DNA of 63,698 bases, filler included, from Reticulomyxa filosa (taxonomy: Eukaryota; Protista; Foraminifera), in assembly GCA_000512085.1 (NCBI GenBank). It is 26 parts of 26 records of this genome, joined end to end, with 100 filler letters (N's around TTAATTAATTAA, not from the genome) between each part and the next. Parts side by side here need not be neighbours in the genome. Positions count along the whole stretch, not along the records: positions 9,982 to 13,888 come from ASPP01005753.1; 25 more parts are not named here. One strand, written 5' to 3'. Under the pieces are notes generated by a model. That model searched no databases. It was not told where the DNA came from and saw only the letters and a list, made by a program, of their open reading frames with translations. A program made the translations under genes and the position numbers. Each line of letters opens with the position of its first letter. Position 1 is the stretch's first letter. Shown here one piece after another: positions 11,313-12,489 of this stretch.

Positions 11313-12489
11313 ATGGCCTATGAATATTTGTATGCAATATGTTTGTCTGTAACCTTAGGAGAAGTGGTTCGACTAAGACAAGGGAGCTAGAAGAGGAATA
11401 ATTCAACAGCAAAAAAAAAAAACACACAAGCATACCCAACACGATGTCACAACACAACAAACACAAACAACACAACGTGCAGATTCAAGTTTATAGCTAT
11501 CGGAGACACTGGAGTTGGCAAAAGTTGTTTGCTTTTGCAGTTCACAGATCACCGATTTAACCCGGATCATGAATTAACAATCGGTGTGGAGTTTGGGACG
11601 AGCACAATTCAAATCCAGGACCATGCGATTAAGTTGCAAATCTGGGACACTGCAGTTTTTTACAGAAGAAAACTTTTTTTTGGATCTGCTGGTTTTTTTT
11701 TTGTTTTTTTTTTCTTTCGTTTCCCCTTCGCTCTCCTGGCTTCTCCCCTTTTTTTTTAATATCCCCCTTTTCTCTCATATTATATGCCGCATATTCTTTG
11801 ATATTATGTCACATCAAAAAAAAAAGGGTCAAGAAACATTCCGTTCAATCACACGCAGTTACTATCGCAACACCGCAGGATGCTTGCTGGTCTATGATAT
11901 CACTAGGTATGTTTCGTTATATATATATATATATAACCGTAAAACAATAATAATAATAAATAATAAATAATGATAACAATAACTGTTTGTTTGTTGGATT
12001 ATCTATGTACTAAAATACTGTATATAGACGTGAAACATTTGCCCACGTAAGTCAATGGTTGGAAGATGCACGCTCATATGGAAGCTCGACCATGACGGTG
12101 GTGTTGGTGGGCAATAAATGTGATTTGGATCACTTGAGACAAGTGACTACGCAAGAAGGAGAAAGTTATGCCAAAGACAAAGGATTACTTTTCATTGAAA
12201 CTTCGGCAAAGGCTTCCATTCACGTCAACGATGTTACGAGTTTTTTTTTTTTTTTTTTTCAATTCTCTCTTTATTTGTATAAAATACAATTTTTTTTTTA
12301 AAAAAAAAAAAGGTGTTTTTATTGCCGTCGACACGAATATATGAGAAAGTACAAAAAGGTGAGTTAGATCCTTCAGACCAAAGCTCAGGGGTTCAGTTGG
12401 GGGTCGCCACCAAAAAATTGGTCGCCGGAAACGCAAAACCACAAGGGACCAAAAAAGCAGATGGCGATTCTTGCTGCACTCTTTTGTAA
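11313..12489 (+). CDS. RAB2: Rab2-family small GTPase, complete, 5 exons (11313-11329, 11483-11654, 11827-11906, 12028-12232, 12313-12489)
   Basis: Spliced product: [28 protein letters not shown]...TIGVEFG...[18 protein letters not shown]...GNKCD...ETSAK...CCTLL*. All introns are GT-AG and phase-consistent. Confidence 0.93.

Follow-up and report, generated by a model that had tools for sequence, protein, structure and literature searches.

How a 3′ splice site is recognized in a gene whose introns carry no pyrimidine tract next to the acceptor AG is the question raised by a Rab2 gene of Reticulomyxa filosa, a naked freshwater foraminifer belonging to Rhizaria. The gene lies in a stretch of 63,698 nucleotides, filler included, that is referred to here as the window; it is stitched out of short pieces because the genome assembly (GCA_000512085.1; 101.9 Mb, 35% GC, 30.5% repeats) is fragmented, with 50,809 scaffolds and an N50 of 3.6 kb. 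The piece that contains Rab2, positions 9982-13888, is the entire contig ASPP01005753.1 (3,907 bp). A preliminary description of the window had taken this gene as the type example of introns with reversed polarity, i.e., U-rich near the donor and rich in A, AC, or purines immediately before the acceptor.

The Rab2 gene is encoded on the plus strand by five exons separated by four introns, with a coding length of 651 nt in frame (Table 1). The five exons were joined solely to check frame and length, and all homology searches were performed exon by exon. Exons 2, 3, and 4 match the Pfam Ras profile contiguously, with nothing missing or extra. P0002, a related genomic open reading frame (ORF) from an environmental assembly that is 71% identical, is uninterrupted over the sites of introns 2 and 3, and its alignment is free of gaps, with residues 50|51 falling at 11654|11827 and residues 77|78 at 11906|12028. 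The tblastn alignment obtained with P0002 residues 3-50 ends at 11654, and exon 3 is 96% identical to P0002 residues 51-77. Three related Rab2 genes (L002, L003, and L085) provide evidence for the remaining junctions: the position of intron 4 is common to all three, and that of intron 1 to two of them (L002 and L085), in which a 17-nt first exon followed by GT is arranged identically. Starting at its first codon, exon 5 aligns with the final exon of L002 (49% identical), and the motif DQSSGVQLG occurs in both. At each site, one GT-AG pair only retains both the frame and the conserved residues; in intron 2, for example, that choice alone restores ...WDTA|GQETF..., as in P0002. On the strength of gap-free protein homology and of intron positions common to relatives, the placement of the four intron boundaries is sound. 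Assignment to the Rab2 subfamily follows from the Ras fold in exons 2-4, the closest characterized relatives being Rab2 (Rab-2B and Rab-2A were the best solved relatives of exon 4 alone, E ~1e-19), and the C-terminal double-Cys motif (CCTLL).

The public annotation differs from this model, in that it gives a 346-aa product for the Rab gene over 11071-12489, whereas homology supports a protein of ~216 aa starting from 11313. This discrepancy would fit the view that the acceptors were misplaced and that the true splice sites follow ordinary pyrimidine tracts. We consider that view highly improbable, however, since profile and orthologue alignments are gap-free over every junction, conservation of intron positions extends to three related genes, no other GT-AG pair retains frame and conserved residues, and a 346-aa product requires translation through low-complexity intron sequence. 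In the public model, these introns and upstream sequence are probably treated as coding. Gene prediction trained on acceptors with pyrimidine tracts will get R. filosa genes wrong, and the 346-aa product looks like such a case.

Table 1. Features of the Rab2-bearing contig, in window positions.
Feature	Position	Strand	Description or evidence
PUB-domain gene (neighbour; context only)	10100..10908	-	Pfam PUB, E = 1.4e-10
Rab2 exon 1	11313..11329	+	ATG + 14 nt; encodes MAYEY and two bases of a Leu codon
Rab2 intron 1, 153 nt	11330..11482	+	GTATGC...GTGCAG; 45% A overall
Rab2 exon 2	11483..11654	+	P-loop to WDTA; Pfam Ras 1-56, E = 1.3e-19
Rab2 intron 2, 172 nt	11655..11826	+	GTTTTT...A10-G; T/C-rich for ~150 nt, then A10 at 11816-11825
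Rab2 exon 3	11827..11906	+	26 residues + 2 nt; Pfam Ras 57-82
Rab2 intron 3, 121 nt	11907..12027	+	GTATGT...TATAG; (TA)n and (AAT)n microsatellites; internal AG absent
Rab2 exon 4	12028..12232	+	Pfam Ras 84-150
Rab2 intron 4, 80 nt	12233..12312	+	GTTACG-AG-T19...T10-A12-G; T at 12290-12299, A at 12300-12311
Rab2 exon 5	12313..12489	+	ORF; CCTLL prenylation tail and TAA stop
Coiled-coil ORF with tandem-repeat N-terminus (neighbour; context only)	12796..13734	-	ORF with tandem repeats

The related genes also differ in several respects from R. filosa Rab2. No intron is present at the intron 2 site in L002/P0002, and L003, a marine metagenome Rab2, has an intron (L003:17-85) placed 3 nt upstream of the corresponding R. 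filosa one (WDT|AGQE vs WDTA|GQE), an offset that could reflect intron sliding or independent gain. The C-terminus is CCTLL in R. filosa (12472-12489) and CACQLL or CACQLI in the environmental relatives. The motif DQSSGVQ(L/I)G, which is present in R. filosa and in the environmental relatives and absent from animal Rab2, suggests that these sequences belong to a common lineage. A homologue search with exon 4 matched six short proteins, none of them from R. filosa; a metagenome scan returned distant Rabs only, at most 59% identical, and a representative search contained no R. filosa entries.

No pyrimidine tract adjoins the AG in any of the four Rab2 introns: the last 20 nt before AG contain 35-50% pyrimidine and 40-60% A, in agreement with the claim of the preliminary description that the intron ends usually lack such a tract. 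Recognition of the 3′ splice site here therefore cannot rest on an adjoining U-rich tract. Intron 1 contains A12 at 11411-11422 and a CACAA-type AC repeat at 11448-11476 that leads into the acceptor, so that its last 20 nt consist of 50% A, 35% C, and 5% T (pyrimidine 40%). In intron 2, T runs are located at 11656-61, 11674-81, 11693-702, 11704-13, and 11749-57, that is, T6 at +2, T8 at +20, T10 at +39 and at +50, and T9 at +95 relative to the donor, and the last 20 nt are 60% A and 35% pyrimidine. Intron 4 has its T19 at +9 from the donor, with 55% A and 45% pyrimidine in the last 20 nt. Intron 3 has a mixed A/T end (A 40%, T 40%, pyrimidine 50%) rather than an A-rich acceptor. Long T runs near the donor are confined to introns 2 and 4. 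An A-rich or AC-rich acceptor is thus found in three of the four introns, and both halves of the reversed polarity in two; the proposed A-rich acceptor holds for the larger part of the gene, and the U-rich donor fails in introns 1 and 3. The letters previously read at acceptors 11482 and 11826 (A10-G) and the long T runs described just after donors 11655 and 12233 match the sequence, as do the place and the A12 of the acceptor at 12312, where the run of T before A12 is T10 and not T9. The zone before the acceptor that is free of AG extends over 50, 156, 119, and 70 nt in introns 1-4, respectively.

The arrangement of runs was evaluated in the four introns of this one gene by shuffles that keep each intron's homopolymer runs and permute their order. 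The mean position of A was 3′ of that of T (index 0.17, P = 0.008), and A was counted at 32 of the 48 positions from -2 to -13 vs 19.6 expected (P = 0.014), both P values being inflated because the gene had been picked as a type example. The Rab2 introns contain three A runs of at least 8 nt, two of which stop exactly at the acceptor.

A second R. filosa contig (L084, ASPP01021843.1), found via the 90% cluster of the neighbouring coiled-coil protein, overlaps the Rab2 locus: L084:1072-2734 is 96-97% identical to window positions 12293-13888, as an allele or a recent duplicate would be. This copy ends within the T run of intron 4 and retains a T(8 or more)-A11-G acceptor in place of A12 in the window; since the copy has diverged by only 3-4%, little can be concluded from its keeping the A run. 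The assembly, which is of the 454 era, breaks at homopolymers, and run lengths in it are unreliable or polymorphic. Beyond the end of the Rab2-bearing contig, L084:207-1089 encodes a WD40-repeat gene whose frame breaks near 860-1000, owing either to homopolymer-length errors or to its being a pseudogene. The intron upstream of it (L084:103-206) brought the R. filosa sample to five introns, four from Rab2 and one from the WD40 gene. Its acceptor reads TTAAC, A16, a short A-rich stretch, and AG, with A at 25 of the last 30 bases; its 5′ part is (GT)n/T-rich, and a T7A8 block occupies its centre. The donor is ambiguous among three in-phase GTs, and the acceptor is placed by reading frame and repeat register, not by an orthologue. 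This intron, an unselected case with an A-rich acceptor, agrees with the Rab2 pattern. When the last 30 nt of all five introns were pooled, the composition was 57% A, 25% T, 13% C, and 6% G, with G at 0-13% in individual introns. Blocks of the T(n)A(n) type recur in R. filosa introns, as T10A12 at 12290-12311 and T7A8 at L084:144-158.

Homopolymers might also be placed at random in these introns, in which case the pattern would not be general and the gene would have drawn attention because two runs lie at acceptors by coincidence. Along the contig, intergenic DNA included, an A or T run of at least 8 nt is met once per ~200 nt, and this gene, picked as the type example, shows both halves of the pattern in only two of its four introns. 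The partial intron of the neighbouring PUB-domain gene adds to this side, with its runs in the opposite order. Exact abutment of two A runs on the acceptor is nevertheless unlikely by chance, at ~1 in 100 per run, and the fifth, unselected intron fits the pattern. We regard random placement as rather unlikely.

That PUB-domain gene lies toward the start of the contig, and 3′ of its long exon (10042-10099, minus strand) a probable donor, GTGAGA, is followed by A8 and then T14. The contig stops short of the acceptor, and the expected downstream UBX domain is off the contig. At the other end, the minus-strand ORF 12796-13734 contains tandem 12/24/48-nt repeats at 13494-13684, which encode a Thr/Ser/Ala/Asn-rich N-terminal repeat. 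Homologue searches with the PUB and coiled-coil proteins returned the query itself as the sole match, and for the coiled-coil protein they detected no relatives outside R. filosa. A 56-nt intron with a pyrimidine-rich acceptor was considered at the 3′ end of the coiled-coil gene (~12770-12828, minus strand) and rejected, because the second copy is without the acceptor; that copy also has a 61-nt insertion there, close to the gene's 3′ terminus. An Rfam scan of the piece found no RNA family.

At the opposite extreme from chance, an A-rich, G-poor stretch before the AG may act as a positive, lineage-specific signal, recognized by a U2AF large subunit that has diverged or by a protein that binds A tracts, with the T-then-A order occurring genome-wide. 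The A excess and polarity noted above, the A10 and A12 runs that directly abut the acceptor, and the A run retained in the second copy speak for such a signal, and the A-rich acceptor of the unselected WD40 intron, which follows a GT/T-rich 5′ part, hints at positive preference over mere tolerance. Against this, the pattern is missing from intron 3, divergence of the second copy amounts to only 3-4%, the P values were obtained on a hand-picked gene, and the related Rab2 genes do not show the pattern at matching intron positions. A signal of this kind is conceivable, and we think it improbable on balance.

The comparison with the related genes covers eight introns from L002, L003, and L085. These contain 40-65% pyrimidine before AG, close to their own overall intron composition, and no pyrimidine tract; a weak 3′ tract is thus common beyond the R. 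filosa Rab2 introns. They have no A runs, no excess of A at the acceptor, and no polarity (index -0.01, P = 0.62). Since A runs are missing from the relatives at matching intron positions, the runs track the homopolymer load of R. filosa and not intron position. Internal AG was observed 7 times in the eight introns vs 25 expected. We rejected this depletion as proof of scanning, because CT is depleted as well (2 observed vs 20 expected), which makes the bias strand-symmetric; GA and TC are not depleted.

We hold with moderate confidence that these are ordinary U2-type GT-AG introns filled with homopolymers and microsatellites, in which a G-poor stretch free of AG precedes the acceptor and A runs are tolerated. 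The non-coding DNA of this genome is saturated with tracts of both kinds. All four Rab2 introns begin with GT and end with AG, and their removal restores the conserved frame (Pfam Ras, P0002). The U12-type RTATCC donor and CCTTRAY branch motif were found in none of the five R. filosa introns. The 35-50% pyrimidine in the last 20 nt falls short of a pyrimidine tract, but such tracts are typical of animals and weak in protists (PMC3033335), and so their presence does not define the U2-type class. A search for YTRAY-like branch motifs 15-40 nt before the AG matched TTGAT (-29) in intron 2, TTAAC (-35) in the WD40 intron, and nothing in the other three introns (1, 3, and 4), so that no branch site was identified; a branch motif shared across introns was considered and rejected, as none emerged.

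Under this tolerance of ordinary filler, the 3′ splice site would be the first AG past a branch site located ~20-35 nt upstream, and the interval between them would be required only to contain no AG. G-poor filler of any kind, whether A runs, AC repeats, TA repeats, or T runs, could meet that requirement, and would avoid AG as well as a pyrimidine tract would. Replication slippage could then lengthen an A run toward the invariant acceptor G without penalty, until the run abuts the G; because any G-poor filler suffices, an expansion of this sort would be tolerated. The T runs just inside the donors of introns 2 and 4 (GTTTTT and GTTACG, both poor matches to U1) may represent the widespread 5′-proximal U-rich tract, which in other eukaryotes aids U1 recruitment via TIA1/Nam8-type proteins. 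The difference in run length between the two copies (A11 vs A12) is in favour of tolerated filler, whereas the two A runs exactly at the acceptor and the nominally significant P values of 0.008 and 0.014 count against it.

The preliminary description had also proposed that introns are defined by U:A or GU:AC pairing of their ends, and had suggested comparing the folding energies of native and shuffled end pairs; that comparison was run. Such pairing would replace the need for U2AF65, as in the (AC)m-(GT)n introns of fish, which exist and splice without U2AF2 (PMC4691745). Relative to dinucleotide-preserving shuffles, the fold z-scores of introns 1-4 were -1.41, +0.15, -0.86, and -0.35, and the introns were therefore not more stable than expected. 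For pairing of the 5′ 45 nt with the 3′ 30 nt, the expected count was at or below that of the shuffles except in intron 4, in which it was 11.0 vs 5.9 +/- 5.2, a value reached by 18.5% of shuffles, and we count no intron as having a pair expectation above the shuffles. Although T19 pairs with A12 in the minimum-energy fold of intron 4, an A:U helix of 10-12 bp is worth merely ~-6 kcal/mol. Among the five R. filosa introns, cognate end duplexes averaged -6.2 kcal/mol vs -5.7 for non-cognate ones, and 40% of all 120 re-pairings of the ends were at least as good as the cognate arrangement. The strongest possible duplex joins ends of different introns, namely the GT-rich 5′ end of the WD40 intron and the AC-rich 3′ end of Rab2 intron 1. 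The latter intron lacks a GT repeat at its own 5′ end, and the WD40 intron has an A-rich, not an AC-rich, 3′ end opposite its GT-rich 5′ end. End-to-end pairing is thus not supported in this small sample of five introns, and we consider it very unlikely as the means by which intron ends are joined.

A broader proposition, that 3′ splice sites in R. filosa and perhaps other foraminifera are set genome-wide by an A-rich, G-poor stretch, with U-rich sequence on the donor side only, is a tentative one that we think unlikely. If true, it would mean that the U2AF large subunit is missing or re-targeted, or that A tracts have a new reader; no paper linking R. filosa with U2AF content was found in the literature. 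A-rich acceptors as a rule would constitute a natural case of 3′ splice-site recognition with a base preference opposite to that of U2AF65, and would bear on whether the role of the pyrimidine tract lies in protein binding or in the avoidance of premature AG. If simple-repeat growth is merely tolerated, the pattern is an ordinary trait of a repeat-rich protist genome. The sequence observation that started this analysis is real and slightly over-generalized.

Several known systems resemble the R. filosa introns in part. Fish (AC)m-(GT)n structure-bridged introns, which splice without U2AF2 (Lin et al. 2016, PMC4691745), likewise have simple repeats at their ends, and R. filosa shares with them one AC-rich acceptor and, in intron 4, the complementary T19 and A12. 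Unlike the fish introns, those of R. filosa show no excess structure or cognate complementarity: the AC tract has no GT partner, the A:U helices are weak, and no stable bridge of complementary end repeats was found. A survey of 22 eukaryotes found, in almost all of them, an enrichment of pyrimidine tracts a short way downstream of the 5′ splice site (PMC2766253); these tracts are bound by TIA1/TIAR/Nam8-type proteins and in animals offset weak donors (Gal-Mark et al. 2009, PMC2766253). The U runs of introns 2 and 4 are similar in lying within ~20 nt of a weak donor, but are longer (up to T19), and those of intron 2 continue for ~100 nt. In Physarum (2015, PMC4758236), as in R. filosa, the genome fragments on homopolymers and introns consist mostly of simple repeats, whereas the Physarum tracts are described as mononucleotide or pyrimidine-rich, and an A-rich acceptor side is not reported there.

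Short, weak 3′ pyrimidine tracts are general in protists and fungi (Iwata and Gotoh 2011, PMC3033335), and in Trichomonas introns the stretch from the branch site to the AG is A/C-rich (PMC13548475). Selection against spurious or premature AG is thought to shape pre-acceptor composition (PMC10946897). The R. filosa introns resemble these protist introns in being short and of the GT-AG type, in having no pyrimidine tract, and in being A/C-rich just upstream of the AG. They differ from those of Trichomonas and diplomonads in that the conserved 12-nt 3′ motif ACTAACACAYAG is absent from all introns examined; in the place of a conserved extended 3′ motif stands variable low-complexity filler, often a pure A run. 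Seen beside these precedents (PMC2766253, PMC3033335, and PMC13548475), the earlier term "divergent splicing code" was overstated: the missing 3′ pyrimidine tract is within known protist diversity, and the A-run acceptors are a modestly unusual variant of it.
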